A stretch of DNA of 64,000 bases from the NCBI GenBank assembly GCA_036785375.1, contig JAWMAR010000471.1, positions 1,116,001 through 1,180,000 on the forward strand. The letters are read 5' to 3'. This document shows positions 1,308-51,326 of the stretch, piece by piece (position 1 is the first letter of the stretch; each line of letters begins with the position of its first letter). This DNA comes from Leucoraja ocellata (Eukaryota). The translations under genes and the position numbers were made by a program. The notes beneath the pieces are model-generated. The model had not been told where the DNA came from and searched no databases. It saw only the letters and a list, made by a program, of their open reading frames with translations.

Positions 1308-1612
1308 ATACATTTCCGCGGGTTCCCAGAGTCCGCCTCAACAATCCTCTCTTTCTGGTGACACTGCCACCTTTAACTGCGTATATTCCGGATTCTGCTC
1401 GTACACAGTACACTGGTACCGACAGTTCCCAGGGCAGGCTCTGGAATTCCTGCTCCAAAGACACACTTCAGGAAAGCAAGACGAGGAAGAGGCTGCCGAA
1501 GGTCGTATTTCTGGTTCTCTCGATCCTGCCCAGAAAATCAGTCAGTTAACGCTCTCTGAATTACTGCCGAGCGACGAGGCTGTGTATTACTGTGGGATGA
1601 GTCCGCGCATCG
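1308..1612 (+). pseudogene. Supporting TCR-delta-like V segment, copy 1 (leaderless; 1-nt deletion just after the splice acceptor)
   Basis: Acceptor ttttccgcag ends at 1307. Near-identical to 13793-14098 but has atacatttccgcg where copy 2 has attccattttcgcg (frameshift). Other frame reads ..TFNCVYSGFCSYTVHWYRQFPGQALEFLL..DEAVYYCGMSPRI. Confidence 0.85.
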
Positions 1613-1651
1613 CACAGTGGCACAGCGCAGTGAGATAGCTGTACCAAAACC
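1613..1651 (+). promoter_or_regulatory. 23-RSS (CACAGTG-23-ACCAAAACC)
   Basis: Heptamer 1613-1619, 23-nt spacer, nonamer 1643-1651, directly after the V exon. Confidence 0.92.
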
Positions 1652-1815
1652 TCAGCGTGGCGGGATACAGGCACACAGCCCTGCAGAACATCTGGGGCGC
1701 TAACCGAGAACCTCAGTGTAGTATGGATTGTTTACACGTTGCCACGGAAGGAGGGAAAGACAAAATTATAAAGATAAATTATGTTGAGACATACAGAAAC
1801 ACAATTAGTCTGGGA

Positions 1816-2037
1816 NNNNNNNNNNNNNNNNNNNNNNNNNNNNNNNNNNNNNNNNNNNNNNNNNNNNNNNNNNNNNNNNNNNNNNNNNNNNNNNNNNNNN
1901 NNNNNNNNNNNNNNNNNNNNNNNNNNNNNNNNNNNNNNNNNNNNNNNNNNNNNNNNNNNNNNNNNNNNNNNNNNNNNNNNNNNNNNNNNNNNNNNNNNNN
2001 NNNNNNNNNNNNNNNNNNNNNNNNNNNNNNNNNNNNN
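1816..2037. other. Assembly gap (N run)
   Basis: Run of N. Confidence 1.
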
Positions 2038-3085
2038 GTCGACCCGCCCTAAGGGGCTTGCCTGTTTTCTACCGGGATGTGTTAAGAGTGAGGAATCTGG
2101 TTGTTTTCAGCCAGCGTGTTGCTCCACGAGGGGAGGGGGATGTTGCGGCTGCGGGAGTGGCCGGTCCTCAACAAATCATGGCGGGTGTCGAGGAGAGGCG
2201 TGCGCTAGAGTGGTGTTAAATGAGCTCTTACCCGCTCCGTCAGATCTGCTCATTGGGCCCCGGTTCCGGGATATATCTCGGGCACCGGTTCCACACAACT
2301 GAGCCGCCTTTCGGAGATGATTAGCGTGCCGTTTCGTGATGCGAAGAGACGCTCACTGTATAGAATGTTCCTGCACATTCTGCACCTCCGTGCCTTCGTC
2401 TCCCGTCCCGACACACCATGGCGGACGGTGATACCACCTGAAGGCGGGGAAAGTCCCCAGTGGGGGTTGCTCTACAAGCGAGTTGTCCCCCTTTACGTGG
2501 GGGACCTGGGGTGGAGAGTGCTGCACAGAGCTGTGGCGTGTAACAAACTTTTGAGTCGGTTCACGGACTCGTCCGCTGCCTGTATTTTTTGTGGCGAGGA
2601 AGAGACCGTGTTCCACATTTCTATGGAGTGTGAGAGGCTACTGCCCCTGTATCAATATCTGAAGGGGTTGTTCCTAAAGTTCTGGCTACATTTTCGTCCT
2701 ACGATTCTTGTGTTTGGACACAAGGCAGGGTGTGGGGAGAGCCAAGTGGGAGGGTGTGACCTACCTGTCGGTCTACTCCTGGGCCTGGCCAAGATGGCCA
2801 TACGCGGGTCCAGGCAGCAGGCGATGGATGGTAAGGCAGGAGTCGGCTGCTTGCCCCTCTTTCGGTCTACGTCCGTGCACCTGTGTCCTGGAGAGGGAAC
2901 ATGCGGTGCTCACGGGGACTTTGGAGGTATTCGTGGGCGCTGGTCACCGCGTGGTGTTGAGAGTATTGTGAATAATGATTGTAACGTTGTACTATAATGA
3001 CACGATATATTGTAAGTTCGTTTTGTGTATGACTTGTTCTGTTGTATTATTTGATGTGTTGAATAAAGTCTTTGAAAAAGAAATA
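2038..3085 (+). mobile_element. Tx1/L1-clade non-LTR retrotransposon, 3' end
   Basis: ORF 2317-2997 has the L1/Tx1 C-terminal zinc finger (GDLGWRVLH..ACIFCGEEETVFH..EC). Followed by AATAAA, an A-rich tail and (GA)n. Confidence 0.85.
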
Positions 3086-3374
3086 AAGAGAGAGAGAGAT
3101 AATCTCCCGCTTCCCTGAACGGAATCGAATTCGTACCCGGGAGCATGAGGGAAACTGGCTTAATTATTGTGCCTTAATCTACGTAACTCATCCTGGCCAT
3201 GGAAGGGAGAAAGAAGGGAGAGAGAACTGGAGAGGGAAGGGGAGTGGTTAGGGGTAGAGAAGGGGAAAGGAGTGGAGACAGTTTTAAATTTAACGAGATC
3301 AAGTGCAGACCGTTGGTTCTGGTCCCCGAACGTCCACAATAAGTGGGTTTCTGGTTTCCTAAGTGGTGCATGGG

Positions 3375-4003
3375 CTTTAGCATTCATAGCAATAGGATTT
3401 GAATATAGGAGCAGGGAAGTTCGGCTGCAGTTATACACGGTCTTGATGAGACCACAGCTGGATTATTGGTAGAGTTTTGGTCTCCAAATCTGAGGAAAGA
3501 TATTCTTGCCATAGAGGGGAGCACAGAGCAGGTTCACCAGACTGATTCCTGGGATGTCAGGACTTTCATATGAAGAAGACTGGATAGACTCGGGTGTACT
3601 CGCAAGAATTTAGAAGATTGAGGGGGATCTTATAGAACTTACAAATTGTTAAGGGGTTAGACAGGCTAGATGCAGGAAGATTATTCCCGATGTTGTGGAA
3701 GTCCAGAACAAAGGGGTCACAGTTTAAGGATATGGGGGAAATCTTTTAGGACCGAGATGAGAAAAAAGTTTTTCACAGAGAGAGTGGTGAATCTTTGTAA
3801 TTCTCTGCCCCAGAAGGTAGTTGAGGCCATTTCCTTGGCTATATTTAAGAGGAGTTAGATGTAGCCTTATGGCTAAAGGGGTGGAGAGAAGGCAGGAACA
3901 GGATACCGAGTTGAATGATCAGTCATGATCATATTGAATGGCGGTGCAGGCTCTAAGGGCGAATGGCCTACTCGTGCACCTATTTTATATGTTTCTATGT
4001 TTC
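3375..4003 (+). mobile_element. CR1 LINE 3' fragment
   Basis: FEYRSREV.LQLY and KKFFTERVVNL motifs; CR1 3' UTR and ttctatgt tail. Confidence 0.85.
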
Positions 4004-5224
4004 TCTGAGAGACATAAGCTCCGGAGATAAACATGCGATCGAACACGGGAACCACCCCCTCAGACCTGCGCAAGAAGCGTTGGGAATCAGCGTGGAGCTG
4101 AAAGAAAAACATTAAAGATTCATACAAGAAATTTTCACTTTTATTTAGCTGGATAGAAACTTCCAAATTTGTTTCACGAGAGATCAGAAATTTAAAAAAA
4201 AAAACACGTAGTAAGGCTTTGTAGAGTTAATCGGGAGAATCATCAATATTGTTATGGGGCATACAATATACTTTCAATGGAGACAAAAGCGGAGGGTAAG
4301 ATTTCAGCAACGGAATTCAAGCCATTTGGCCTAAGGAGCCTGCTGCATTCATAGAAACACACGAGTAGGTAAATGGACAATGGTCTTCGTTATGATTATC
4401 CCTACTAAATGGCGAGAAATATGGTTCAAAATTTTCCCCACCACACAGAATAATTCCGCTCACATTTACATGTCACGGAATGCGCGAATAAACATGTCCC
4501 CGTGAGGGGATGCTGCATGATAATGTTGGCAAAGTTGACATGTGGACACCTGGAGGAGTTTATTATCACTTAATATATTAGACATTGGTTTGTGAACGAC
4601 AGAGTGCACGAGCAATGTTTATTTTAGAACACGATAACTTCATTTTAATTCATAAATGGCAGAATATTTTATTTTCTTCACAGTTTGCGAGGGAAGAGGA
4701 GAAATAGGTAGATACAAAGTTAACCCCCCACCAGCCCCAATTTTGTAGTATCAGGGGAACATTATGCGGCTTGCCGCCTCTTGAGTGCAAATGAACAGCA
4801 GGCAGTATCTCTACAGGAAAAGGATAGATGACGGTTCTGGTCAGGATCCTTCTTCCGTCTGCAAGTAGGGCGAGGCCACTGGATGCAAGAGTAGGCCAGA
4901 ACGAGGCAGGGAAGGCAACACGTGACTAGGAAATGAAGGAGCCCATAATGGCCCATTGTTGGCTGTGGAATAAGTGGTCACACACAACTACAAAGATGCG
5001 AGCAGTACTACTAGTGTGATGACTATGTTGGGGGTGATTGTGAGAGAAATGGAGTCAAGCGACCTACGAGATGCTGTTCCTCCATTTTGTGCGTGGCCTC
5101 GTTCTAGCAGTTGAGGAGGACAACGACAGAATGGTTTATATGGGAATGGGTAGAGGTGTTAAAATGTTTGCCCACCTGGGAACGTAAAGGACAATGTGGA
5201 AATTGATTTATTACCGTAAATGGG

Positions 5225-5580
5225 AGCCACAGAGTCACAGAGTCACAGAGTGATACAGTGTGGTATCAGGACCTTCGGCCCAACTCGCCCACACCGGCCA
5301 ACAATATCCCAGACACACCAGTCCCACTTGCATGCGCTTGGTCCATATCCCTCCAAATCTCTCCTATCCAAGTAACTTTCTAACTGCTGCTTAAACGACG
5401 GGATAGTCCCAGGCACAACTACCTCTTGTCGCAGCTTGTTCCGTACATCCACTAACCTTTGTATGAAAATGTTTCCCCACCGAATCCTCTTAAATATGTT
5501 TCCCTTCTCCTTGATCCAATGTCCTCTGGTCGTAGATTCACTGGGCAAACGACTCTGTGCATCTAACCGATATATTCATC
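5225..5580 (-). mobile_element. Degenerate CR1 3' fragment (paralogous copies at ~16150-16500, 22060-22420, 52590-52950)
   Basis: TRGH..K.KG..F..RGNIFIQR.V..RNKL motif and CR1-type 3' UTR on the minus strand. Confidence 0.7.
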
Positions 5581-6205
5581 TCACGATTTTGTATTTCTGG
5601 CACTCCTCACCTATAGCTTTACTTTCGATAGACGTTTTCCATATACAGAAGGTATTTTAAACACGGTATCTGTATGAAACTTTGCACAATCCACATCATC
5701 CGCTGCTAAAACAGCAGATTCTCTTGAAGCCGAAAATCTCGTCAATGAGCAATTTTTAACGTTTTTTTTAATGATAAAAGGAATTCATCAAACAACACGT
5801 TGCACCTATTCAACTGAAAATATTCACTCGTTTTGAAAACAACATGTTTCAGCCTTATGTATACATATTCGTGAACACACAGAAGTTGGATGATTGAACG
5901 GGGCACATGGGAATACGTACACGAGTTGAGACTCAGTTGAGCCCATGAACCCCCGAAGCCGTTGGGCGTGTCCGACAGGGCGAATGGACATAAAATGCTG
6001 TATTTCCATATTTTATTTTTATTTTTTATTTAACCTTTATTTAACCAGGAGAAGTCTCGTTGAGATTAAAAATCTATTTTACAAGAGAGTCCTGGCCAAG
6101 ACTGACAGCAGCACAGTTCCACAGTTCCACAGTTCCACAGTTCCACATATACACCATACAGCAAAGGAACGCATGGAGACCAGCTGGTCACTCGTTTGTG
6201 TTATA

Positions 6206-7463
6206 TTATTTTAACTCACACTTTACCGATTTAAATATCTTTCCAGTGCAAATGATCGGATATGTTAGAACACGAAACAGCTCCTCTCTGAACTTGCTCT
6301 GGGTCACTGTGTAAATGGCCGTGTTGGTGCAGGAGCTCAGCAGCTGAAGCATAAATCCAACCCTTTCCAATCCACCCAAGGGGTTTCCCCAGGCCTTGTG
6401 CATAAACACATTCAAACATCGAACCGCAATAAACTGTGCAACACTTGTGGCCCAGAGCAGGATGAAGCAGCTCGAGATTGCCAGAAGTAAAACGACCGAC
6501 CGTCTGCGGTTCACCATCTCCTGGTCTTTCTTTTTCTCGCCACCGCTGAGGTCCCGGAGGTTCCTGCGGACCCGACTGGCCACGAAAATACGTCTGACGG
6601 TGAGCGCGTTAAACAACAAAATCAGGCAGAATGGAATCACCGGGGTGAACAACTGTTCGGCCCAAGAGAACACTATCCATTCGGGATCGACGTAGAAAGA
6701 TACGAGTTTCAGGCAGCCCACTTCTCTACCCGCACCGTAAAAAGTGGTGTATGCAAAGGGCAAGGGTAGATTTTTGAGGCAGATGAGCGGGCTCACGGTC
6801 AGGATAACAATCGTCGCGGTTCTCTCGGTACAATATTTGGTTTTCATTCTCTGAGTAGAAATCGCAACAAAGCGATCAAAGGTGAAAGCGACCGTGAACC
6901 ACACAGAACAATTAACAGAGACTGATGCCAGGTAGATTGTCATTTTACACACATGAGTGTAGGGCACGGAGGCATGCCACCAATACATATCAGCAATCCG
7001 GCGAAATATCACCTCACAGAGAATCACGGAGAGGTCCGCCGTCGCCATGGCTACCATGTAACGAGTGATGCACTTGGAGAGGCCGCACTTGCCACGGGAC
7101 AGGATCACAATCGCTATCAGATTCACTGGGAAAGAATGAAAACAGAAACGGATTAATTTTGAGGTGTACAGGTTGGTGGGATGGGAGCAGACGGAGAAAA
7201 CCGAAGATCTGGGGAAAACCCAAAAGGATACGGGGAGCAGTGCAATCTCCGTACAGACAAGCGCTGTAAGACAGTTACTCTAGCGCTGTACCAGCGTGCC
7301 GCCCGAACCCCCGCTGGGCTACTCACTATGTCCTCTTAACCTTTAATATTCTGCGCTTTTCAAACATGAGATGTGCCGACAATTACCTACCAGGTATACC
7401 GATTGCTGCCAGAATCGGATAATACACAAGTCCTATTTTTACCTCGATCGGAATACCGTGCAT
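6206..7463 (-). CDS. Class A GPCR, GPR139/GPR142-like, copy 1; exon1 7463-7391, exon2 7125-6206; 330 aa
   Basis: 7TM ORF with MAxAD (TM2), FTFDRF (DRY variant), TM3 and ECL2 Cys, and SSCTNTAIY (NPxxY variant). Exon 1 ATG..MHGIPIEVKIGLVYYPILAAIGIP|G gtaggt splices in phase 1 to acceptor ttctttcccag|TGAAT. Confidence 0.9.
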
Positions 7464-7542
7464 TTTAATACGGGGATCCAGGCGATCACTCCTTGTGCTG
7501 CAGTTCAGCGGTTGTCAGCCAAGCAAACAAATATCTGCCATA

Positions 7543-7548
7543 TTTATA
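7543..7548 (-). promoter_or_regulatory. Putative TATA box of GPCR copy 1
   Basis: TATAAA on the minus strand 80 nt upstream of the ATG; same offset in all four paralogs. Confidence 0.6.
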
Positions 7549-7649
7549 ATGCAAATGAAGGGAAAAACAGGCAACGAGATTACATCCCTGTGGACATCAC
7601 TTACACACTTTTGAACAAACATCTACGGTTTTGCATGTAATACTCAAAA

Positions 7650-10280
7650 TCACCTTAGTCTTAAACTGTGTCCCCTGGTTCTGCACGCCCCCAACATCGG
7701 GAACATGGTTCGCGACTCTAGCGTGTCCAAACCCTCAATAATCATATATGTTTAAATAAGAACCCCTCTCATTCTTCTAAATTCCAGAGTATACAAGATC
7801 AGCCGCTCCATTCACTCAGCATGTAACAGCCACACCATCCCGAGAATTAACCTTGTGAACCTACGCTGCATTCCCTCAGTAGCAAGAATATTGGACCGGC
7901 TAGATGCAGGAAAAATGTTCTGGATATTGAGAGTGTCCAGAACCAGATGTCCCAGTTTAAGAATAAGCGGTAGGCCATTTAGAAACATAGAAACAGAAAA
8001 TTCGATGCCGGAGTAGGACATTCGGTCCTTCGAGGCAGAACCGCCATTCAATGTCTTCATGGCTGAACATCTAAAATCAATACCTCGTTCCTGTTTTACC
8101 CCATATCCCTTGATTCCTTTAGTCCCAAGAGCTAAATCTAACGTTCTCTTGAAACGTCCGGTGAAAATTCCTCCACTCTATTCTGTGCCTGAGAATTCCA
8201 CTGATTTACAACTTTCTGGGTGAAAGAGACGTGCCCTCATCTCAGTCCTAAATGGCCTATCCTTATTCTTAAACATTGAACACTTATTTTCGACTCCCCC
8301 AACACCGGGAATATGTTTCCTGCATCTTGCCTTGCCAACCCTTTAAGAATGGTATATGTTTCTTTAACATTGCCTCTCATCCTTCCAAATGCCAGTGAAT
8401 ACAAGAACAATCAACCCGTCCTTTCATCATATGTCAGTCCCGCCATCGCGGGAATTAACCTGGAGAACCGATGCTGCACTTCCTCAATAGCAATCATGTT
8501 CTTCCTCAAATTAGGAGGTCAAAGTCATTCACACATGCGGTCTCACAATGGCCCAAAACACCTTAGGACTGAGATGAGGAAAATCTGTTTCACCCAGAGA
8601 GTTGTAAATCTGTGGAATGCTCTACCACAGAAGGCCGTGGAGTCCAATTCACTGGAATATTTCACAAGAGAGTTAGATTTAGCTCTTCGGGCTAAACGAA
8701 ACAAGGGATATGGGGAGAAAGCAGGAACGGTGTACTGATTTTAAATAGAAACATCGGAGCATAGAAATATAGGTGCAGGGAGAGGCTATAAGGCCCTTCC
8801 AGTCCGCGCCGCCATGATCATAGCTGCTCATCCACAAACAAATACCCGTGCCTTTCTTCTCCCCATGCCCCTGCATTCCGCTAGCCCCAAGACCTCTCGC
8901 TGTCTTTTAATTTCATCCAGTGAATTGGTCTCCACTGTCTTTTGTGGCAGAGATTTCCACAAATTCACAACTCTCTTGGTGAAAGAGATAATTCTCATCT
9001 CAGTTTTAAATGACCTCCCTTTTCTTCTTAGACGTTGGCCCCTGGTCTGTGCTCCCCCAGCATTGGGAACATTCTTCCTGCATCTAGCTTGTCCAGTACT
9101 TTTATAATTGTATATGTTTCTATAAGATCGCCCCCTCATCCTGCTGAATTCGAAAGAATACAAGCACAGTCTTTCTCATATTCCTCAAATGACAGACCTG
9201 CCATACCTGGGCTGGACCTTGTAAACTCCCTCAATAGCAAGGAAGTCCTTCCCCTAATTAGGAGACATAAACTGCACACAATATTCAACATGTTGTCTCA
9301 CCAGTGCCGTGTACAACTGCAGAAGGACCTCCTTACTCGTGTACTCAAATCCGCTCATTATGAAGGCCAACATGCCATTACATTTCTTTACTACCTGCTG
9401 TAGAACACCCAGGTCACGTTCCACTTCCCATTTTCCCCAATTGAAACCATTGAGATAATAATCTACCTCGATGTTCTTGTCGTCAAAGTGGATAATCTCG
9501 CATTTACCTGCATTAAACAGCATATGCCATGGCTTCCTTTACGCAGTTAAAACTGTCACCCAGCTTTGTGTCATCTGCAAATTTGCTCGTGTTACTTTTA
9601 ATTCCATAATCTAAATCACTAATATATATTATCAATAGTTACGGCCCGTGCACCGAGCCTAGCGGCACTCCACTCGCCACTGCCTGCCATTCTAACAGGG
9701 GCCTACTTGTTCCATTTTACTTGTCACATTCTCAAACATTCCAGATCGGAGTCAAGCAGGATTTCCCTTCCATAACTCCATGCTGACTTGGGCTAATCAT
9801 TTTACCGCTATCCAAATGCGTCGTTGTTACTTTAAAAATTGACTCTGGCATCTTCCCCAGTTCCGATATCAGGCTAACTGGTTTCTAATTTCCCGTTTTC
9901 TCTCTCCCTCCTTTCTTGAAAAGTGGGGTAACATTAGCTCCCCTCCAATCCACAGGAACTGATCCTGAAGCTATAGAACATTGGAAATGATCAATAAATA
10001 CGTCCACGATTTCTAGAGCCACTTCCTTGAGTAGTTGTGATGCAAACCATCACACCCTGGGTATTTAGCAGGCTACAGTCCCATCAGTTTACCCAATGCT
10101 ATTTCTTGCCCAATGCAAATTTATTGCAGTTCCTCTTTCTCCAGAGACCCTCTGTCCTCTAGTACACCTGGGAGATTGTTGTGTCTTCCCTAGCGAAGAT
10201 AGAACCAAAGTACCTATTCAACTCTTCTGCCATTTTCTTGTTCCCATAATTATTTCACCTGTTCTGCCTTCTAGGGACTG
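7650..10280. mobile_element. Mosaic of CR1 LINE fragments in both orientations
   Basis: Repeated CR1 motifs (TEMRK..FTQRVVNLWN, EYCVQF, GMLAFI) on both strands with stops and frameshifts. Confidence 0.8.
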
Positions 10281-10585
10281 ACATCTGCCTGAATGGTTCA
10301 GATGGTCTACTGAACGTCAGAGAAACGTGAAAGCCACGTCAGATGTTTCACATCAGATTCCGGGCCACCAAACAAATCAGCAGGTTTAACGGACCCCGTC
10401 TCTAATTCTCCGTCTATTCGCACATCGATTGGGATTTTTTCAAAACTCTCCAGGACAACACACTCACCGAAACGAACATACGAGCTGTTGCTCCAGCTCA
10501 GTTCTCCGGGATAGGCTGCAGGATCTGTCCGGCGACCTGGGTCCTGCCTCTCGCCAAGTAAACCATTTATCCCGGAGAAGGCGCG

Positions 10586-10628
10586 ATGGGAATCCTCCTG
10601 TTGTTTGTGCTGTCATTCTGCTTACGCC
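10586..10628 (+). CDS. Leader (L1) exon of the NAR-type V gene: MGILLLFVLSFCLR
   Basis: ATG at 10586, hydrophobic signal peptide, phase-1 donor C|gtgagt at 10629, ~140 nt upstream of the V exon. Confidence 0.85.
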
Positions 10629-10771
10629 GTGAGTACTCCCACACAATGCGGGTTTAACATAAAACTACTCGCGTCCACTCCGACCTGAATTTCAAACACT
10701 CCCCGTGATGTACCCTTCAGCCATGGTTCGCCTGGAATTCCCACTCACCTCTCCCTGTGTTTAATCCACAC

Positions 10772-11064
10772 ACTCCGTCAGTCAGTCAGTGACCCAGATC
10801 CCGAATGCGGTGACTGGAAAAGAGTGTGACCCCGTCACCATCACCTGCCTTTTCCAAGAAGGTTCCATTGGCAGCTACGTATTTAATGAAGGACATTTCG
10901 TCAAGCAAGCACAACCCGGTGCTACACGGCAGCGGATCACAACAGGTGGACGGATCGTTGTGTCGAACAATAAAGTGGAAAAGACATTTACGTTGAAAAT
11001 TCTTGGTTTGAGAGTTGAGGACATGGACACATATTACTGTCGAGCTGAGTACAAGTGGAGGAGG
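10772..11064 (+). CDS. NAR-TCR-type V segment (NTCRV-like); frame open but expected splice acceptor reads CAC rather than CAG
   Basis: QSVTQIPNAVTGKECDPVTITC..GHFVKQ..RITTGGRIVVS..KTFTLKILGLRVEDMDTYYCRAEY. Canonical Ig-V cysteines, the short C'-C'' region typical of IgNAR/NAR-TCR V, an extra FR1 Cys (KEC), and an RSS immediately downstream. Confidence 0.85.
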
Positions 11065-11102
11065 CACAGTGATGGGCCTGCGCTTCGCGCAGCACAAAAA
11101 CC
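11065..11102 (+). promoter_or_regulatory. RSS with 22-nt spacer (CACAGTG-22-ACAAAAACC)
   Basis: Perfect consensus heptamer 11065-11071 and nonamer 11094-11102. Confidence 0.95.
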
Positions 11103-13242: not shown

Positions 13243-13620
13243 CACGGTGGCACAACGGTAACGGTAGAGGTGCTGCCTAATAGCGCGTTTAGCACCAGAG
13301 ACCCGAGTCCGATCCCGACTCCGGGTGTTGGTGGTACGGAGTTTGTATGTTCTCCACATAATCTGTGTGGGTTTTCTCCGAGATCTAGGGTTTCTTCCCA
13401 CACTCCAAATACGGACAGTTTTGAAGGTTTATTGGCGCTCTATAAATGTAAATAGTCCATCGTGTGCGTAGGATAGTGTTAATGTGCGGGAATGCAGGGC
13501 GGCGCGGACTTGTGGGTCGAAGGGCCCGTTTCCGCGCTGTGTCCCCAAACTAAAGTAAACTGAACTAAACTGAACTAATGTAAACTAAACCAAACTATAC
13601 TAAAGTAAACTAACCTAAAC
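13243..13620 (+). mobile_element. tRNA-derived V-SINE-like element with (ACTAA)n-like tail
   Basis: Head cacggtggcacaacggta..gagtccgatcccgac (A/B-box-like), V-SINE core ggagtttgtatgttctcc..gggttttctccg..ggtttcttcccaca, tail taaactgaactaaac. Confidence 0.75.
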
Positions 13621-13792
13621 GAAATTAAATCTCCACTCGTCGAGGGAACAATTAAAGGATCCATAAATAACGTTTCCATATATTTTGCAAAAATGTGATG
13701 AACTACCGGAGACGGTAACTAGTTTCTGTGTGTGTCACAGTCTCCAACAGTCAATGTTAAAACAATAACTATGCCCCTGTTATTTTCCGCAG

Positions 13793-14098: not shown

Positions 14099-14137
14099 CA
14101 CGGTGGCACAGCGCAGTGAGATAGCTGTACCAAAACC
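14099..14137 (+). promoter_or_regulatory. 23-RSS (CACGGTG-23-ACCAAAACC)
   Basis: Heptamer 14099-14105 (CAC retained), nonamer 14129-14137. Confidence 0.9.
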
Positions 14138-14304
14138 TCAGCGTGGCGGAATACAGGCACACAGCCCTGCAGAACATCTGGGGCGCTAACCGAGAAACTC
14201 GGTGTAGTATGGATTGTTACACGTTGCCAGGGAAGGATAAAAAAGCAAAATATTTAAAAGATAAATGGTATTGAAATTTACAGAAACACAATTAGTCTGG
14301 GAAG

Positions 14305-15243: not shown

Positions 15244-15274
<31 letters not shown>

Positions 15275-15361
15275 ACCCGCATCAGTCTGCAGCAGGGTCT
15301 CGACCTGAAACGTTATCTTTTCCTATTCCTTCTCCCGATAGATCCACGGTCGCCAGGCTCC

Positions 15362-41369: not shown

Positions 41370-41959
41370 TTTAATTCGACGGTCTCGGCGATCACTCCTG
41401 GTGCTGCCACTCAGCGTTTGTCAGCGTAACAAACCAATCTCTGGCACATTTATAAAGGAAATAAAGGGGAAAATAGGCAATTAGGTAACATCCCTGTGGA
41501 CATTACTAACAGACTTTGGAACAAACAAGTACTGTTTTCAACGTAATATTCAGAAATCACAATCACGCCGGCGACCGCTCCAATACATTTCCAACAGCAG
41601 GCAGTGAAGCATGAATTTAAACAAAAATCCAAAGTAACGCACGCGCAGTGAAGTTGATCGCGAATGTTCCGAGCAGCGATTTATTTCCTAGACCCTTACA
41701 TCCGATGACGAGACAAGGACAGTTGCCGTTTCTGTGCAACTTTGAGACGGCAACAGCAGAGCCAGAGCGTAACGGCACCTGAGCATATCCACTGGGCACC
41801 TAGCGGCAGTTTTTGTTTTCAGAAAACAGGCGAATGGGGCGAAAGAGCATCAAAAGAGAGACGAAAAGTAGAATTTATCTAGCATTAATAAAACACGGAC
41901 ATGTAAATTAATTATCGTGGCAGCGTGGTTTGTCGGCTCCGTCCCAGAGTTAGCAGCCA

Positions 41960-43600
41960 GAAACATAGAAAATAGGTGCTGGAGGAGGCCATTCGGCCAC
42001 ACGAGCCAGCACCGCCACTCATTGTGATCATGGCTGATCGCCCCCTATCAATAACCCGTGCCTGCCTTCTCCCCATATCCCTTGAATCCACAAGCCCCCT
42101 AGAGCTCTATCTAACTCTCTCTTAAATCCATTCAGTGACTTAGCCTCCACTGCCCTCTGCGGCAGGGAATTCCATAAATTCACAACTCTCTGGGTGAAAA
42201 CGTGTTTTCTCACCTCAGTCTTAAATGACCTCCGCTTTATTCTAAGATTGTGGCCCCTGGTACTGGACTCGCCCAACAATAGGAACAGTTTTCCTGCATC
42301 TAGCTTGTCCAGTCCTTTATAATTGTATATGTTCCTATAAGACCCCCCTCATCCTTCTAAACTCCAGTGAATACAAGCCTCGCCTTTTCAATCTTTCCTC
42401 ATATGACAGTCCCGCCATCCCAGGGATCAATCTCGTGAACATACGCTGCACTGCCTCAATCACAAGGATGTCCTTCCTCAAATTAGGAGACCAAAACTGT
42501 ACACAATGCTCCATATATGGTCTCACCAGAGCCCTATACAACTGCAGAAGAACCTCCATACTCTTATACTGAAATCATTTTGTTATGAAGGCCAACATTC
42601 CATTAGCTTTCTTCACTGCCTGCTGTACCTGTAAGCCAACTTTCAGTGACCGGTGTACAAGGAGTACCTAACCCCATTGAGATAATAATCTGCCCCCTTG
42701 TTTTTGCCGCCAAAGTGGATAACCTCACATTTATCTATATTATACTGCATCTGTCACGCATCTGTCCACTCACTCAACCTGTCCAGGTCATCCTGCAAAC
42801 TCCTAACATCCTCTTCACAGTTCACACTGCCACCCAGCGTTGTGTCATCCGCAAACTTGTCAGTGTTGTTCCTAATTCCCTCTTCCAAATCATTAATATA
42901 TATGGTAAACATTTGCGGCCCCAACACGGAGCTTTGCGGCACTCCACTCGCCACTGCCTGCCATTCTGAAAAGGAACCGTTCACTCCTACTCTTTGCTTC
43001 CGGTCTGACAACCAATTTTCTATCCATGTCAATACCCTACCCCCAATACCATGTGCTCCAATTTTAGTCACCAGTCTCCCGTGCGGGACCTTATCAAATG
43101 CTTTCTGAAAGTGTAGATACACTACATCCACTTGCACCCCTTCTTCCATTTTACTTGTCACATCCTCAAAAAACTCCAGAAGATTAGTCAAGCATGATTT
43201 CCCTTTCATAGATCCATGTTGACTTGGACTAATCCTTTTACTGCTATCCAAATGCCCCGTAATTACCTATTTAATAATTAACTCCAGCATATTTCCCACC
43301 GCCGAAGTCAGGCTAACTGGTCTGTAATTCCCCGTTTTCTCTCTCGCCCCTTTCCTGGGATAACATTAGCTATCCTCCAATCCACAGGAACGGATCCTGA
43401 ATCTATTGAACATTGGAAAATGATCACCAATGCGAGCACTATTTCTGGAGCCACCTCCCTGAGCACCCTGGGATGCAGACCATCGGGTCCTGGGGATTTA
43501 TCATCCTTCAGTCCCATTAGCCTACCCAATACTATTTCTCGCCTAATGAAAATGTCTTTCAGTTCCTCTACCCCCTTAGATCTACCCCCTTGATTATGCT
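41960..43600 (-). mobile_element. CR1 LINE 3' half
   Basis: ORFs 42028-43529 with RT motifs; 3' tail agaaacatagaaa at ~41960. Confidence 0.9.
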
Positions 43601-43665
43601 ACGAGCCCTGCCGAGGCCACGCGAGCTTTAAGTAAATGCGGTGTGCCTGTATTCCGCCACGCTGA

Positions 43666-43770
43666 AGTTTTGGTACAGCTGTCTCTCTGCGCTGTGCCAC
43701 TATGCGATGCGTGGACTCATCCCACAGTAATACAAAGCTTCGTCGCCGGCAGTACTACAGATAGCGTTAA
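43666..43770 (-). pseudogene. Inverted 3' fragment of a supporting V with a dead RSS (CATAGTG)
   Basis: Reverse complement of 31356-31461; heptamer 43698-43704, nonamer 43666-43674. Confidence 0.85.
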
Positions 43771-44149
43771 TAATGCAGGAATGCCAGTACAAGGCCTGTT
43801 GTTTGTTTGTTTGATGAGAGGCTGGACGGCCAAAGGTGGTGGGAATTGCTGCACCGCGGCTTATAACATCGACGAAAGATCAACGCGAGGCCCCAGTCGG
43901 GCTGGGTACCGGTATTATTCCGACTGTCAATGATCCAGTGAAAGGTAACATACAGATTGCAATGAATGCAGTCACCAGCAGGGATGGAGAAACACAGGAA
44001 CACAGAAAATAGCTGTAGGCGTAGGTCATTCTCCTTTCGAGACAGAACTGACATTCAATATGATCCAGGCATTTGGGCACTGGAGGTGGGGTAGCTCTGT
44101 TGGTGAGGGGTGAAATGGACGCCCTTGCGAGGGTTGACAGAGGGACTGA

Positions 44150-47100
44150 CTGAAATCACGTTGGTTCTGGAACACAAGAAAGGGAGTTTGTAGAGTGCTT
44201 CTGAGATGGATTCTTAAAGCAACTTGCATTGGAGCATACAAGAGACAAGGCAATTCTGGATTTAGTGTTGTCTAATCCACCAAATTTAGTAGGGGAAATC
44301 TAGGTAAGGAACCGCAAGGAGGTAGTGACCATTATATGATAAGTTTTAATCTGCAATTTGAGAGGGAGAAAGTTAAATCAGAATTGTCAGTGTTGCGGTT
44401 GAACAAAGGGGAATTACGGCATGGGAGAAGACCTGGCCAAGGTCGACTGGAAAATGATTCAAACAGGAATGACGGAGAAAGAGCAATAGCAGGAATTTCT
44501 GTCCATTATGCAGAAGATGCAGGATCATTTCAGTCCAAAGATGAAGAAATATTCTAAGGGGAGTAAGAGGCAACCGTGGCTGACAAGGGATGTTGTGAAC
44601 GGTATAAAACTAAACGAAAAGATGAATAAAATAGCAAAGAATGGCGGGAAGCTAGATGATTGGGAAACATCAGAAGTAACAGAAAGGGCAATACGGTGTG
44701 AAAAGATGAAGTACAAAGGTAAGCTCGCCAGGAATATAAAGAAGGGCTGTAAAAACACATTTAGGTATGTTAAGAGAAAAAGATTAGGAAAGGCAGATGT
44801 GGGTCCCTTAACAGCAGAAGCTGTTGATATTATTATGGGGAACAAGGAAATGCCAGAAGAGTTGAACATGTACTTTAGTTCCGTTTTCGCTAACTAAGAC
44901 ACAAACATCTCCCAGATGTACTAGAAGACTAGTGAGACGTATTACAGAGTCCTAGCGAGACCACATCTGGAGTATTGTGTGCAGTTTTGGTCCCCAAATT
45001 TGAGGAAGGACATTCTTGCTATTGAGGGAGTGCAGCGTAGGTTTACAAGGTTAATTCCCGGGATGGCGGGACTCTCATATGCTGAGAGAATAGAGCAGCT
45101 GGTCTTGTACCCTCTGCAGTTTAGAAGGATGAGAGGGCATCTCATTGAAACATATAAGATAGTTAAGGGCCTGGACACGCTAGAGGCAGGAAACATGTTC
45201 CCGATGTTGGGGGAGTCCAGAACCAGGGGCCACAATTTATGAATAAGGAGTAAGCCATTTAGAACGGAGACGAGGAAACACTTTTTCTCACAGAGAGTGG
45301 TGAGTCTATGGAATTCTCTACTTCAGATGGCAGTGGAGGCGGGCTCTCTGGATGCTTTCAAGAGTGATCTAGATAGGGCTCTGAAAAATAGCGGAGTCAG
45401 GGGATATGGGGAGAAGGCAGGAACGGGGTGCTGATTGGGGATGATCAGTCATGATCACATTGAATGGCGGTGCTGGCTCGAAGGGCCGAATGGCCTACTC
45501 CTGCACCTATTGTTTATTGTCTATTGTCTATAAGACAGACGGAGAAACTGAAAGACATTTGCATTGGGCCATAAATAGTATTGGGTAAACCGCTGGGACT
45601 GAAGGCTGATAAATCCCTAGGATCTGACGGTCAACATCTCAGGGGACTCAAGGTCGTGGTTCTAGAATCCGTGGACGTATTGGTGATCATTTCCAATGTT
45701 CAATAGATTCAGGATCAGTTCATGTGGATTGGAGAGTAGTTGATGTTATCCCACTTTTCAAGAAAGGAGCGAGAGCGAAAACGGGAAATTAGAGAACAGT
45801 TGGCCTGACATCGGAGCTGGGGAAGATGCTGGATTCAATTATCAAAGACGTAATAACGGCGCATGTGTACACAATTAAAAGATTGGTCCAAGTCAGCATG
45901 GATTTATGAAGAGGAAATGCTGCTTGACAAATCTTCTGGAATGTTTTGAGAATGTGACAAGTAAAATGGATGAAGGAGTTACCTTCAGAATGGCAGGCAG
46001 TGGCGAGTAGAATGCCGCAAGGCTCGATGCAGGGGCCGCAGCTATTGACAATATAGATTAATGATACATCTGATGCATTTAAAAGTAACACGAGCAAATT
46101 TGCAGATGACACAAGGCCGGGATGCAGTGTGAACTGCGAAGAGGATGCGAGGTGGATGTAAGATGACCTGGACAGATTGAGTGAGTGGGCAGATTCATGG
46201 CAGATGCTGCATAATGTAGGTAAATGTGAGGTTATCCACTTTGACGGCAATAGCATGGAAGCAGATTATTAATAATAATAATAATGGATGGGATTTATAT
46301 AGCGCCTTTCTAGATACTCAAGGCGCTTTACATCGCATTATTCATTCACTCCACAGTCACACTCGGTGGTGGTGATCTACTTCTGTAGCCACAGCTGCCC
46401 TGGGGCAGACTGACGGAAGCGTGGCTGCTAATCTGCGCCTACGGCCCCTCCGACCACCACCAAACACTCACACACATTCACACACATTCACACGTGTGTG
46501 ATTATTATCTCAATTGTGTCAGATTTGGGGAAAAATGGATGTGCGACGAGACTTGTGTGTCCTTGTCCACCAGTCACTTAATGCGAACATTCAGGTTCAC
46601 CAGGTAGTGAAGAAAGCTAATGGCATGTTGGCCTCCATAACGTGAGGATTTGCGCATAGTAGTACAGATCCTTCTGCTGTTGTGCAGGACCTTGGTGAGA
46701 CAACATCGGCAGTATTGTGTGCAGTTTTGGTCACCCAATTTGGAGAAGGAAATCCTTGCTATGGAGGGAGTGCAGCGTGGTTCACAAGGGTAACCCACGG
46801 TATGGCGGGACTCATAAGAGGAAAGATTAGAAAGATTGGGCATATATTCACTGGAATTTAGAAAGATGAGAGGGCGCCTTGTGGAAAAAGAAACAATTAT
46901 AAAAGGACTGGTCACGCTAGATGCAGGATTTTTTTTTGCAACTGCTATGGGAGTCCAGAACCAGGGGCCATCGTCTAAGGGTAAAGGGGAGGGCATTTAA
47001 AATTGAGATGAGAAAAATCTTTTTCACCCAGAGAGTTGTGAATATGGGGAATTCTGTCACAAAGGGCAGTGGAGGCCAATTCGCTGGATGAAATGAAAAG

Positions 47101-48960
47101 AGAGGGAGATAGAGCTATTGGGGCTGGGAGAATCAAGACACATGAGGAGGCAGGCACGCGTTACCGATAGTGGATGAGCAGCCACGATCAATATGCATGG
47201 CGGTGCTGACTCGAAGGGCCATATACCCTCCTCCTGCAGTTATTTTTCTATGTTTCGATGTTTCTATTTAAAATCAGTACCCCGTTCCTGCTTTCTCCCC
47301 CCATAACGTTTTGAGTATAAGAGGAGGGAGTTTCTACTGCAGTTATACAGGGTCTTGGTGAGACCACACCTGGAGTATTGCGTACAGTTTTGGTCTCCTA
47401 ATCTGAGGAAATACATTTTTGCCATAGAGGGAGTATAGAGAAGGTTAACCAGACTGATTCGTGGGATGGCAGGACTTTCATATGAAAAAAGACTGGATAG
47501 ACTCGGCTTGTACACGCTGGAATTCAAAAGATTGAGGGCGGATCTTATAGAAACTTACAAAATTCTTAAGGGGTTGGACAGGCTAGATGCAGGAAGATTG
47601 TTCCCGATGTTGGGGAAGTCCAGAACTAGGGGTCACAGTTTAAGGATAAGAGGGAAGTCTTTTAGGACCGAGATGAGAAAATCATGTTTTACACCGAGAG
47701 TGGTGAATCTGTGGAACTCCTTGCCACAGAAGGTAGTTGAGGCCAGTTCATTGACTATATTTAAGAGGGAGTTAGATGTGGCCCTTGTGGCTAAAGGGAT
47801 CAGGGGGTATGGAGAGAAGGCAGGGATGGGATACTGAGTTGGATGATCAGCCATGATCATATCGAATGGCGGTGCAGGCTCGAAGGGCCCAATGGCCTAC
47901 TCCTGCACCTATTTTCTATGTTTCTATGTTTCTATCCCTTGTTTCGATTAGCCCTAAGAGCTAAATCTAACTCTCTCGTGAAATCTTCCAGTGAATTGCC
48001 CTCCATTGCCTTCTTTGTTAGAGCATTCCACCGATTCACAACTCTCTGGGTGAAATAGATTTTCCTTATCTCAGTCCTAAGTGGTTTTGGGCCCTGTTGA
48101 GGCCGCATTTGTGAATGATTTTGGTCTCCTAATTTGTGGAAGGACTTGATTATTATTGAGGAAGTTCAGCATCGGTTCTCTAGATTAGTTCCCGCGATGG
48201 CGGGACTGACATATGATGAAAGAATGGGTTGAGTGTGCTTGTATTCACGGGCATTTTGAAGGATGAGAGGGATTTATAGAAACATACAATTCTAAAAGGG
48301 TTGGATGGGCTAGATGCAGGAAACATGTTCCCGATGTTGGGGGTGTCCAGAACAGGGAGTCAACGTTTAAGAATAAGGATAGGTAATTTTGGACTCAGAT
48401 GAGGGGAATTCTATTTCACCCAGAGACTTGTGAATCTGTGGAGTTTTCTGCCACAGAATAGAGTGGAGGACAATTCACTGGATGTTTCAAGAGAGAGTTA
48501 GATTTAGCTCTTGGGGCTACAGGAATCATAGGATATGGGGAATAAACAGGAACGGGGTACTGATTTTAGATGATCTGCCACGATCGCATTGAATGGCGGT
48601 TCTGGCTCGAAGGACCGAATGGCCTACTCCGGCATCGAATTTTCTGTTTCTATGTTTCTTAATGGCCTACCACTTATCCTTAAACTGGGACATCTGTTTC
48701 TGGACTGTCAATATCCGGAACATTTTTCCTGCATCTAGCCGGTCCAACAGTCTTGCTACTGAGGGAATGCAGCGTTAGTTCACACGGTTAATTCCCGGAA
48801 TGTTGGGGCTGTTACATGCTGAGAGAATGGAGCGACTGAGCTTGTATACTCTGGAATTTGGAAGAATGAGAGGGGTTCTTATTTAAATATATAAGGTTAT
48901 TAAGGGTTTGGACACGCTAGAGTCACGAACCATGTTCCCGATGTTGGGGGCGTGCAGACC
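44150..48960. mobile_element. Nested CR1 fragments (mirror of 26160-30980)
   Basis: CR1 motifs; ORFs mirror those of the left arm. Confidence 0.8.
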
Positions 48961-49172
48961 CAGGGGGGACAGTTCAAGACTGGTGATTTTTAGTATTACA
49001 CGGAAAACAGTAGATGTTTGTTCAGAAGTGTGTAAGTAATGTCCACAGGGATGTAAGCTCGTTGCCTGTTTTTCCATTTATTTGCATTATAAATATTCCA
49101 GATATTTGTTTGTTTCGCTGACAACCGCTGAGCGGCAGCACAAGGAGTGATCGCCTGGACCGTCGCATTAAA

Positions 49173-51326
49173 ATGCACGATATTCCGATCGAGGTAAAAA
49201 TAGGACTTGTGTATTATCCGATTCTGGCAGCAATCGGTATACCTGGTAGGTAATCGTCGGTTCATCTCATGTTTGAAGAGCGCAGAATATTAAAGGTTAA
49301 GAGGACATAGCGAGTAGCCCAGCGGGGGTTCGGGCGGCACGCTGGCGCGTCGCGAGAGTAACTGTCTTACAGCGCTTGGCTGTACGGAGTTTGTACGTTC
49401 TCCCCGTATCCTTTTGGGTTTTCCCCGAGATCTTCGGTTTGCTCCCACGCTCCATATAAGTAAAATAAATTGTACCTTGTGTGTGCCGGCTGTTGTGAGT
49501 GTGCGCGATCGGTGCGGATTAGGTGGGCCGGTGTTGTGTTTTCGCGCTGTATTCCTAAACTAAAATAAAGTAAGCGATATCCACCGCAGGAGCGATATGT
49601 GATGGATGCCGCTCATTCAAGCTGGCAGAAATGTAGCCCTCACGGCTTTTTTTACTAAAATCAATGCCCGTATTGATTTTACTACGTCGCCTGTCGATGT
49701 CCTCCAGAGATATTACTTGCGCCACTGAGATACACCACCATTGGCTCTTGTCAGGTGCAGTACACAGGCCCGCCCGCTGCTCGGCAGAAAATATCTGCCC
49801 GTTATGTTGTTAGCCGTGTTTGCGAAGGGGGTTTGTAATTATATTTGCTGCGCTTCACTGAATCCCTTTCCTTGGCCCCGTGTTGGGAGATGCATTCTCG
49901 AAGGCCCAATGGAAAACAGACCGCGTTAATCCAGGCCGCGATTGACTACATGCCCCGACTCAAAAGTTGCCCACTTCTCAGCAATAAAAAAAATTTAGAG
50001 ACACTGACTCACCGCTTGAAAATATTATATATTTTACATCAACATCAAACGGTTGGCATAATGTTGTGAAGATTAGTACAAAAGGAACTCCCACTAATCT
50101 TGGTAAACGGTATTTTATCCATTTGCAGATTAAATTCCTGATTTCTAAAATCGGATTGCCTCTTGTACCAATATTTTCAGCTTTATGTAATTATTTTCTA
50201 CATAAGGCAATCCCACTAATTTTGCTAATCAGGAATTTAATAATTTACTGAATGAACATCTTTCTGGCAAACGATTGACGGATGATTGACCCAAATACTG
50301 ATTCGTTAAATAAACAGTCTCTACCACTGGCGACACAGGTTTAAATGACTGCATCTGCTCCCACCCACCACACAATTAATCAGTTTCTGTTTTCATTCTT
50401 TCCCAGTGAATCTGATGGCGATTTTGATCCTGTCCCGTGGCAAGTGCGGCCTCTCCAAGTGCATCACTCGTTACATGGTAGCCATGGCGACCGCGGACCT
50501 CTCTGTGATTTTCTGTGAGGTGATATTTCAGCGGATTGCTGATATGTATTGGTGGCATGCCTCCTTGCCCTACACATCTGTGTGCAAAATAACAATCTAC
50601 CTGGCATCGGTCACGGTAAATTGTTCTGTGTGGTTCACGGTCGCTTTCACCTTTGATCGCTTTGTTGCGATTTCTACTCAGAACATGAAAACCAAATATT
50701 GCACCGAGAGAACCGCGACGATTGTTATCCTGACGGTGAGCCCGGTCATCTGCCTCAAAAATCTACCTTTGCCCTTTGCATACACTTCTTATCTCGGAAT
50801 GGGTGGAGAACTGGGCTGCCTCAAACTCGTAGATTTTTACGTTCATGCCGAATGGTTGGTGTTCTCCTGGGCCGAACAGTTGTTCACCCCGGTGATTCCA
50901 TTCTGCCTGATTTTGTTGTTTAACGCGCTCACTGTCAGACGTATTTTCGTGGCCAGCCGGGTCCGCAGGAACCTCCGGGACCTCAGCGGTGGGGAGATAA
51001 AGAAAGACCAGGAGATGGTGAACCGCAGACGGTCGGTCGTTTTACTTCTGGCAATCTCGAGCTCCTTCATCCTGCTCTGGGCCACAAGTGTCGCACATTT
51101 TATTGCGGTTCGAAGTTGGAAACTGTTTGTGTTCAAGGCATGGAAAAATCCCGCAGAAGAATTTGAAAAGGTTGGAAATATGCTTCAACTGCTGAGCTCC
51201 TGCACCAACACGGCCATTTACACCGTGACCCAGAGCAAGTTCAGAGAGGAGCTGTTCCGTGTGCTAACATATCCGATCATTTGCATTGGAAAAATATTTA
51301 AATCGGTAAAGTGTAAGTTAAAGTAA
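49173..51326 (+). CDS. Class A GPCR, GPR139/GPR142-like, copy 4; exon1 49173-49245, exon2 50407-51326; 330 aa
   Basis: Intact 7TM ORF; exon 1 MHDIPIEVKIGLVYYPILAAIGIP|G gtaggt; acceptor ttctttcccag|TGAATC; TATAAA at 49088-49093; about 11 aa differences from copy 2. Confidence 0.9.

Follow-up and report, generated by a model that had tools for sequence, protein, structure and literature searches.

The 64-kb stretch of skate DNA analysed here (the window) raises the question of why intact GPCR genes stand among rearranging V segments. It contains four intact two-exon class-A GPCR genes (G1–G4), one NAR-type V, three copies of a supporting V (svA–svC) and two 134-bp V relics. The elements run in the order svA, G1, NAR V, svB, relic of a GPCR 3′ flank, G2, V relic, svC, G3, V relic, G4, which bears out the preliminary description of RSS-bearing V segments and relics interleaved with four intact two-exon GPCRs. 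Transposable elements are abundant across the region. No published description of such an alternation of GPCR genes and TCR V segments was found in the literature searched.

The window is composed of five contigs, and none of the four N runs between them interrupts a V or GPCR exon. Three of the four lie directly 3′ of the three supporting-V copies, where a GA-rich microsatellite is present in svB. The linkage of GPCR and V is independent of the gaps because contig 2038–14520 alone bears G1, the NAR V and svB; a single contig (33900–64000) likewise carries G3, a V relic and G4. svC lies on a 1247-bp island (32500–33746) flanked by two gaps, and its placement is therefore the least certain.

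A scan of both strands gave exactly four heptamer/nonamer RSS, at 1613, 11065, 14099 and 33630, all on the forward strand and hence in one shared orientation, with spacers of 23, 22, 23 and 23 in that order. The perfect RSS at 11065 had no equal in 100 shuffles. The V elements are the following.

~1309–1612, forward strand: svA, a supporting V exon of TCR-delta type, intact and leaderless, with a CDR1 Cys (open frame, V-set E 7.6e-15)
1613–1651, forward strand: 23-spacer RSS of svA (CACAGTG / ACCAAAACC)
10586–10628, forward strand: leader exon of the NAR-type V, with ATG, hydrophobic leader and GTGAGT donor (direct reading)
~10790–11064, forward strand: NAR-TcR-type V exon with an a-b loop Cys and without Trp at the WYRK position
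11065–11102, forward strand: 22-spacer RSS of the NAR V, heptamer and nonamer perfect
~13798–14098, forward strand: svB, an intact supporting V
14099–14137, forward strand: 23-spacer RSS of svB (heptamer CACGGTG)
31356–31489, forward strand: V relic L, remnant of a supporting V (last ~23 codons) with a dead RSS (heptamer CATAGTG)
~33335–33629, forward strand: svC, a frameshifted supporting V that has lost 9 nt in one deletion and 1 nt in each of two others, on the 1.25-kb island
33630–33668, forward strand: 23-spacer RSS of svC
43638–43770, reverse strand: V relic R, a mirror copy of relic L

The description of NAR-TcR reportedly originates with Criscitiello 2006. NAR-TcR is a TCR delta that undergoes double rearrangement and combines an N-terminal NAR V with a supporting delta V (PMC1845163, PMC3457774). 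In the sections of PMC1845163 on its sequence, the NAR V has a leader, a Cys in the a-b loop and no Trp at WYRK, and the delta V is leaderless with a CDR1 Cys. All five features are present in the skate cassette, in which the leaderless second V also has a splice acceptor, and the NAR-TcR-type assignment made in the preliminary description thus holds as far as those sections define the type. The NAR V leader is hydrophobic and 14 aa long, and its donor phase matches the acceptor at 10789/10790 (direct reading). The NAR V reads TGKECDPVTITC and has HFVKQ in place of WYRK. Its best single-domain PDB matches are VNARs (8hgi_C, E 1.5e-12; 7fbj_B; 4hgm_A; others), the only row above them being an scDb construct of four V domains, and its Pfam V-set score of 24.6 bits is slightly below the 26-bit cut-off. 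All three supporting-V copies begin immediately after ttattttccgcag and have SGFCSY or SGICSY as CDR1. In svA, ttttccgcag lies directly upstream and a leader exon is absent; ATGs upstream of the supporting Vs run into stops within a few codons, and the sole in-frame one (svB) gives no hydrophobic leader.

The skate window differs from NAR-TcR in two respects: the 2.7 kb separating the NAR V from svB yielded no NAR D or J, and a NAR V is in view for only one supporting-V copy of the three. The sections of PMC1845163 and PMC3457774 that deal with NAR-TcR make no mention of GPCR genes between cassettes. Even under relaxed criteria, 11103–13797 contained no 12- or 23-RSS pair and no J-like FGxG or GxGT motif, although diverged D or J segments may evade such consensus scans. 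The sole candidate there, at 13221–13275, proved to belong to a tRNA-like SINE, of which it is the head. The 64-kb window as a whole showed no D, J or C segment.

The supporting-V copies diverge from one another by only ~3–5%, and svA and svB have a pN/pS of 0.92, based on 8 changes only. The view that all GPCRs remain intact and most V copies decay is overstated: half of the V elements, three out of six, are intact, and a fifth GPCR unit has lost its coding region. Two of the three non-intact V elements are one duplicated relic and the third is the frameshifted svC. The 1-nt deletions in svC fall in homopolymers (A runs).

The GPCR ORFs are 302–306 aa long (6206–7126, 23687–24607 and 38639–39547 on the reverse strand; 50406–51326 on the forward strand) and all four match Pfam 7tm_1 (57.6–63.3 bits against a cut-off of 30.5; E 3.2e-17 to 1.7e-15). 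In every gene a first exon of 70–73 nt lies upstream, running from ATG to CCTG/GTAGGT and spliced to the acceptor cccag/TG (slashes mark exon boundaries), with identical splice signals throughout. A tblastn search of the window returned four matches, namely G1–G4, and no further coding GPCR copy.

6206–7125, reverse strand: G1 exon 2 (TM1 end to stop)
7391–7463, reverse strand: G1 exon 1 (24 aa + 1 nt, donor GTAGGT)
7464–7654, reverse strand: G1 promoter / 5′ UTR block, ~190 bp, with a counterpart upstream of exon 1 in G2, G3 and G4
23687–24606, reverse strand: G2 exon 2
25895–25967, reverse strand: G2 exon 1
38639–39546, reverse strand: G3 exon 2 (older subtype b)
41300–41369, reverse strand: G3 exon 1
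49173–49245, forward strand: G4 exon 1
50407–51326, forward strand: G4 exon 2

The promoter block of all four genes contains a TATA-like TTATAAATA and an invariant element, ATGTCCACAGGGATGT. Identity between the old subtypes is 79–82% over the ~190 bp before the ATG compared with ~40% in distal sequence. Values of dN/dS range from 0.27 to 0.68 across all six GPCR pairs. Exon 2 has no gap openings over 73 substitutions (G1–G2) or over 21 (G2–G4), compared with 23 gap openings per 331 substitutions in the non-coding flanks of G2 and G4, whose proteins differ at 10 amino acids. The G2–G4 pair by itself (21 substitutions) is weak evidence of constraint. Variable sites are more frequent in extracellular loops (45 of 73) than elsewhere (71 of 232; Fisher p 3.6e-6). 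We infer from these comparisons that the GPCR copies are working genes maintained by purifying selection, with variation concentrated extracellularly. Four RNA runs of coded tissue had zero depth on G1 (6195–7587) and on the NAR V alike, and the result for G1 is uninformative because the NAR V also had zero depth in those runs.

The GPCRs had been called GPR139-like, a name that holds for the family profile but not for a single sequence searched by itself. A 30-member family profile searched against the PDB has human GPR139 (7vug) at the top (E 1.8e-20, 76.5 bits), 26 bits ahead of the next match at 50.4 bits. With a single sequence GPR139 scores 22.3 bits (E 6e-4), behind seven other receptor entries that include adrenergic, 5-HT2A and opioid receptors. 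Homologs carry the automatic NCBI label ‘probable GPR139’. The best 120 matches to the family are all chondrichthyan proteins or unnamed sequences. At 50% identity, 98 clusters score at E <= 1e-30, and each chondrichthyan sampled shows expansions specific to its lineage. With these clusters and expansions, the family is not in one-to-one orthology with vertebrate GPR139. Human GPR139, an orphan class-A receptor, is the nearest solved relative of the family profile; it is a single-copy neuropeptide-type receptor, whereas the chondrichthyan family comprises ~100 clusters at 50% identity with lineage-specific expansions and has DRF and NTxxY motifs, the canonical class-A motifs being DRY and NPxxY. 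On sequence grounds G1–G4 are a skate-specific clade of a large chondrichthyan GPCR family that is distantly GPR139-like; no description of such a chondrichthyan-specific family was found in the searched literature. The closest database proteins are P0003 of Leucoraja (95.9%) and P0004 of Amblyraja (91%) for G3, and P0001 and P0002 for G1, G2 and G4; these relatives in two skate genera are probably orthologs, judging from similarity. Family paralogs are scattered genome-wide, on contigs of at least ~25 different lengths in Heptranchias perlo alone. Scattered paralogs with no enrichment near V segments had been put forward as evidence against a GPCR family tied to the V array; scatter is seen for the family at large, but the skate subclade adjoins V segments. 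It is the only subclade known to do so.

That GPCRs and V segments were copied together is evident from three arrangements. The G1 unit (4520–10290) is collinear with the G2 unit (21360–30336), which is followed by a V relic. A V copy followed by a GPCR 3′ flank occurs twice (1101–1815 then 4520–6211, and 13586–14302 then 15960–17121). Finally, 17120–32299 is repeated in inverted orientation as 59912–42828, with 95.6–96.6% identity. The preliminary proposal, from shared flanks, of a duplicated [V + GPCR] unit is upheld by these arrangements, and V relics L and R are a single event that was copied later.

17120–32299, unstranded: inverted duplication, left arm, which contains G2 and V relic L and terminates at an assembly gap
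42828–59912, unstranded: inverted duplication, right arm, which contains V relic R and G4
15960–17121, reverse strand: relic of the fifth GPCR unit, 3′ flank only (87% to 5051–6211), cut at the stop codon by a retroelement

The assembly is gapped and places the two arms on separate contigs, so that some of the copies could owe their existence to assembly. Divergence between the G1 and G2 units is uneven (3′ flank 5%, exon 2 7.9%, upstream ~18%). Given this, and the low divergence of the supporting Vs, gene conversion or several events are therefore needed rather than one clean duplication of the whole unit.

A precedent exists in mammals. As had been stated at the outset, OR genes neighbour TRA/TRD V arrays: in the relevant part of PMC4574546 they are placed among the first TRAV genes of human (OR10G2, OR4E2), mouse (Olfr1507-1509) and sheep, between TRAV1 and TRAV2. 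In both cases, to the extent that this source describes the mammalian one, class-A GPCRs that play no part in recognising antigen are located between rearranging V segments of TCR alpha/delta, and deletional joining of more distal V segments would excise them. The mammalian genes belong to a different GPCR family, and OR structures are absent from the 60 best PDB matches of the GPCR family profile used here. Mammals have two or three OR genes at the edge of the locus, whereas in the skate GPCR and V have been co-amplified as a repeat unit, four to five per 64 kb.

We consider it likely that the window is a V-region piece of a skate TCR alpha/delta-type locus (the NAR-TcR / delta-V part), with an embedded skate-specific GPCR clade as a non-lymphoid by-product. 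Segmental duplication in this TE-rich region copied blocks of ~10–15 kb, each with a V cassette and a GPCR gene, in tandem steps and one large inverted step. Deletions, TE insertions and probably gene conversion then drove the copies apart, giving a birth-and-death pattern. Each GPCR would be transcribed from a conserved TATA promoter of its own, and the cells concerned would most likely be non-lymphoid (sensory or neural), a proposal that is indirect. That the GPCRs stand among V segments would merely reflect the site of the family's founder, as for the OR genes within the mammalian TRAV array, and their loss through V(D)J deletion in T cells would be without consequence for the animal. The lack of D, J and C in the window stands against this explanation. 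It would also fit an orphon cluster, in which V cassettes and GPCRs were copied outside the functional TCR alpha/delta locus and the Vs never joined to D/J/C, as would the failure to find NAR D/J behind the NAR V, the frameshifted V, the two relics with a dead heptamer, the pN/pS of svA and svB (from 8 changes only) and zero NAR V reads in the four RNA runs. We regard an orphon cluster as unlikely, however, in that three V elements retain open frames and good RSS, and 64 kb without D/J is normal within a V array.

A partial assembly artefact, with contig 14659–32299 an alternative haplotype or misplaced, svC misplaced and a true count of ~3 GPCRs and 2 supporting Vs, appears quite unlikely. 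In its favour, the five contigs are joined by estimated gaps, that contig repeats a portion of contig 33900–64000 over 86% of its length, inverted and with 96% identity, and svC is a contig of its own whose frameshifts are 1-nt losses in A runs. However, ~4% divergence, a 2-kb insertion difference and 23 indels are high for alleles, the amino-acid differences between G2 and G4 argue likewise, and both interleaving and co-duplication hold regardless on the two contigs that bear GPCR and V together. It is highly improbable that the GPCRs have an immune function, being expressed in T or lymphoid cells with V(D)J deletion varying the GPCR complement between T-cell clones. The evidence for this is physical position: deletional joining from svA would remove G1–G4 because all intact V segments point to higher coordinates. 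Against it, the wider family lies on many contigs unrelated to the window region, the GPCR genes have conserved TATA promoters of their own, mammalian OR genes in the like position have an olfactory role, each rearrangement deletes from one chromosome, and paralogs persist.

The arrangement in the skate extends the mammalian oddity of OR genes among TRAV to a cartilaginous fish, with another GPCR family and a much tighter coupling, that of one amplification unit. If locus-wide mapping confirms this, the window would be a concrete case of the duplication machinery of an antigen-receptor locus driving the expansion of an unrelated gene family. Cartilaginous fishes have only a handful of OR, TAAR and ORA genes, and a sensory role may be worth considering for an orphan receptor family that is large and varies in its outer loops. 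We tentatively raise the possibility, doubtful at present, that the family is an undescribed, fast-evolving ligand-sensing (probably chemosensory) repertoire of cartilaginous fishes, of which the skate clade was amplified inside a TCR alpha/delta V array prone to recombination. V cassette and sensory receptor would then form one repeat unit and be born and lost together. OR promoters and enhancers have a homeodomain site adjacent to an O/E-like site, and the invariant promoter element of G1–G4, which resembles such adjacent sites, would in that case point to control of the olfactory-neuron type.

The four GPCR genes (G1–G4) each carry an open reading frame of 302–306 residues that matches Pfam 7tm_1 at 57.6–63.3 bits against a cut-off of 30.5 (4/4). 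This frame starts in every case at a splice acceptor (cccag, followed by TG) within TM1, and an exon 1 of 23–24 residues (ATG...CCTG, donor GTAGGT), located by tblastn with the N-termini of annotated skate homologues, lies upstream in 4/4 genes. The intervening intron measures ∼265 bp in G1, ∼1.29 kb in G2, ∼1.16 kb in G4 and ∼1.75 kb in G3. The preliminary description had all GPCRs intact, which holds for G1–G4, open and of two exons each, but not for a fifth unit that is reduced to its 3′ flank and interrupted exactly at the stop codon by an adjoining retroelement copy. No further coding GPCR copy was found in the window by tblastn. In one copy of the retroelement the open reading frame encodes a GIY-YIG domain (PF01541, 23.9 bits versus a cut-off of 22.6), which makes the element Penelope-like.

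6206-7126, minus strand, G1 exon 2 open reading frame
23687-24607, minus strand, G2 exon 2 open reading frame
38639-39547, minus strand, G3 exon 2 open reading frame
50406-51326, plus strand, G4 exon 2 open reading frame
15960-17121, 3′ flank of the fifth GPCR unit, 87% identical to 5051-6211
17120-20526 and 56505-59912, retroelement, with pieces at 34647-35026 and 36516-37054

Protein searches were carried out with the exon 2 products alone, exon 1 being placed separately. They returned 2,156 of 3,330 candidates within an E value of 1e-3, and the best 120 of these 2,156 come from chondrichthyans or are unnamed sequences, with almost all of them called 'probable/putative G-protein coupled receptor 139' (two are 'G-protein coupled receptor 15-like' and two nameless). 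When all 50%-identity representatives were searched, 98 were found at E≤1e-30, after which identity falls from >40% to <32%. Judged by these searches, the predicted receptors constitute a discrete, expanded family. DRF and N-T-x-I-Y are invariant across 30 aligned members; the canonical class-A motifs are DRY and NPxxY. Human GPR139 barely matches a single window sequence, at 22 bits, and after this result the name 'GPR139-like' was thought to be a mere automatic one. That view was discarded when a 30-member profile ranked GPR139 top by 26 bits (E value 1.8e-20); the Atlas's nearest named clusters bear the automatic name GPR139 too. The label in the preliminary description is accordingly kept as a fair one for the apparent nearest known relative, but not as a statement of orthology.

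A quick maximum-likelihood tree was built on 73 rows, made up of the four window genes and 69 of the 120 hits listed (51 hits excluded). In it, G1–G4 and the closest database skate proteins (P0001–P0004, from Leucoraja and Amblyraja) form a skate clade with an SH-aLRT of 100, divided into two subclades that each hold a Leucoraja and an Amblyraja member. This clade is nested within a batoid clade (99), adjoining separate expansions in Heptranchias, Pristiophorus and Mustelus/Scyliorhinus. G3 is 95.9% and 91% identical to its closest Leucoraja and Amblyraja proteins, respectively, which sets the window's skate apart from both of these species as annotated. The Leucoraja proteins P0001 and P0003 are from a 208-kb contig, the Amblyraja proteins P0002 and P0004 from one of 59.9 Mb and the Heptranchias cluster from one of 29.8 Mb. 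Heptranchias alone shows ∼25 distinct contig sizes among the hits listed, so the wider family is scattered genome-wide. Genome-wide scattering of paralogues had been set against a link with V segments; it applies to the wider family, but the skate clade sits among V segments and is the only clade known to do so.

Exactly four RSS were detected in the window by RSS scan, every one on the plus strand, and the perfect RSS at 11065 was equalled in 0 of 100 shuffles. The V elements comprise a single NAR-type V (NAR V), three copies of a leaderless TCR-delta-type 'supporting' V (svA, svB and svC) and two supporting-V relics.

10790-11064, plus strand, NAR V exon, with leader exon at 10586-10628
1309, plus strand, svA
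13798, plus strand, svB
33335, plus strand, svC
31356-31489, plus strand, V relic of 134 bp
43638-43770, minus strand, V relic of 134 bp
13221-13580 and 32765-33130, tRNA-like SINE upstream of svB and svC

NAR V has a Cys seven residues ahead of the canonical Cys and HFVKQ at the WYRK position, and its closest single-domain PDB relatives are VNARs. The supporting V lacks a leader exon, its V exon directly following a polypyrimidine-cag acceptor, and it has a CDR1 Cys and a Pfam V-set match (E value 7.6e-15); as a protein query it gave 1 match among 3 candidates, from Callorhinchus. The same feature set is listed in PMC1845163 for NAR-TcR V and the delta V associated with it, and the general NAR-TcR model is given in PMC3457774. 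NAR V and the supporting V share these V features. They differ from the known system in that neither RSS scans, strict or relaxed, nor scans for J motifs found a D or J for NAR V in 11103-13797. A J candidate at 13221-13275 ('TTVTVE + GT', accompanied by a weak 13-spacer RSS) was rejected as the head of the tRNA-like SINE, which recurs upstream of svC. This SINE head imitates a J segment and is a trap for J-finding.

The frames of svA and svB are open, the svB heptamer being CACGGTG, and the two differ by only 8 changes, with a pN/pS of 0.92. By contrast with the earlier statement that most V copies decay, three of the six V elements remain intact, and a single event underlies both relics, which mirror each other; what stands is that svC is frameshifted (one deletion of 9 nt, and two of 1 nt within A runs) and that the relics retain only the final ∼23 codons plus an RSS with its heptamer changed to CATAGTG. 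An in-frame ATG lies nine codons ahead of the V exon in svB (13771-13797), created by a single base that differs from svA and svC; it does not encode a hydrophobic leader.

Self-comparison bears out the proposal that V and GPCR were duplicated as a unit with shared flanks. The three supporting Vs are ∼95% identical together with their flanks, the order of supporting V followed by GPCR 3′ flank is seen twice, and the G1 and G2 units (4520-10290 and 21360-30336, respectively) are collinear. Beyond the G1 unit lie NAR V and then svB, and beyond the G2 unit an svB-like relic that is 91% identical to svB. We read the two units as putative copies of one ancestral arrangement of GPCR, NAR cassette and supporting V, of which the G2 copy would have lost the equivalent of 10290-14032. 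The segments 17120-32299 and 59912-42828 are inverted copies of each other (95.6–96.6% identity, the right arm having a 2-kb TE-rich insertion), and G2/G4 and both V relics therefore go back to one recent event. G3 shares with the other GPCRs only the coding sequence (84% at the nucleotide level) and ∼260 bp around exon 1, and on this comparison is an older subtype (b-subtype; G1, G2 and G4 are a-subtype). The G1 and G2 units diverge by 5.0% over 4520-5702 (versus 21360-22541), by 7.9% in exon 2 and by ∼18% upstream. Such unevenness argues against a single clean duplication and for gene conversion or multiple events, and suggests patchy gene conversion between the two units.

Four N runs join the five contigs of the window, and none cuts a V or GPCR exon.

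1816-2037, N run
14521-14658, N run
32300-32499, N run
33747-33899, N run

Three of the four gaps occupy the same relative spot behind svA, svB and svC (1816-2037, 14300-14658 and 33747-33899). At that spot svB, the best-preserved supporting-V copy, is followed by a GA-rich microsatellite, and a low-complexity GA-rich tract is probably the cause of these assembly breaks. The sides of gap 32300-32499 are unlike, with an RT-bearing TE to the left and a V copy's upstream flank to the right, so that continuity across it is only putative; svC itself lies on a 1,247-bp island flanked by two gaps.

Reads from four RNA runs (coded tissues, perhaps of related species) fell within 5200-11150 solely on TE fragments 95–99% alike; depth was zero on GPCR exons and likewise on NAR V, and the runs are hence uninformative. 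A search of the sequencing-run index found no RNA run containing the GPCR gene.

The preliminary description stated that mammalian TRA/TRD V arrays are neighboured by OR genes, and PMC4574546 gives their positions: human ones lie between TRAV1-1, TRAV1-2 and TRAV2, those of mouse and sheep between TRAV1 and TRAV2. Class-A GPCR genes within a TRA/TRD V array are thus a known kind of arrangement, which the skate window resembles in having such genes among TCR V segments. It differs in its GPCR family, in its taxon and in having V cassette and GPCR co-amplified as a unit, and these three features are new. No paper on the GPCR/V arrangement was found in a search that left supplements and many subscription papers outside, and literature on GPR139 and sharks, or on 'GPR139-like', held nothing bearing on it by title or abstract. 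The main text of PMC12227049, on elasmobranch TCR alpha-delta/Ig linkage, contains neither GPR139, GPCR nor 'G protein', although the coordinates in its table S1 may name neighbours. The importance of the arrangement would be much greater if the family were a sensory repertoire or T-cell expressed.

Exon 2 dN/dS (Nei–Gojobori) is 0.27 for the pair G2/G4 and 0.46–0.68 for the other five pairs. No a-subtype pair shows an exon 2 indel, whereas gap openings in the flanks number 23 per 331 substitutions, a rate at which about five indels would be expected for the pair G1/G2 (an unsimulated estimate). Conservation extends to ∼190 bp before the ATG, which are 79–82% identical between subtypes compared with ∼40% for distal sequence.

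7464-7654, minus strand, conserved block before the ATG
25968-26158, minus strand, conserved block before the ATG
41370-41560, minus strand, conserved block before the ATG
48982-49172, plus strand, conserved block before the ATG

This block contains an invariant ATGTCCACAGGGATGT, bordered by TAAT in two or three copies, and a TATA-like box ∼75 bp ahead of the ATG. Together ATGTCCACAGGGATGT and TAAT look like a homeodomain and O/E-like composite. As a lead only, it may resemble the side-by-side homeodomain and O/E-like elements in OR promoters and enhancers described in PMC7804114. The reading of the GPCRs as decaying passengers is rejected on the strength of the open frames, the dN/dS below 1 and the conserved promoters. 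Among the eight skate-clade proteins, variable sites are concentrated in the extracellular loops (45/73 versus 71/232 elsewhere, p=3.6e-6, with loop boundaries set by eye); these loops are more variable in any GPCR.
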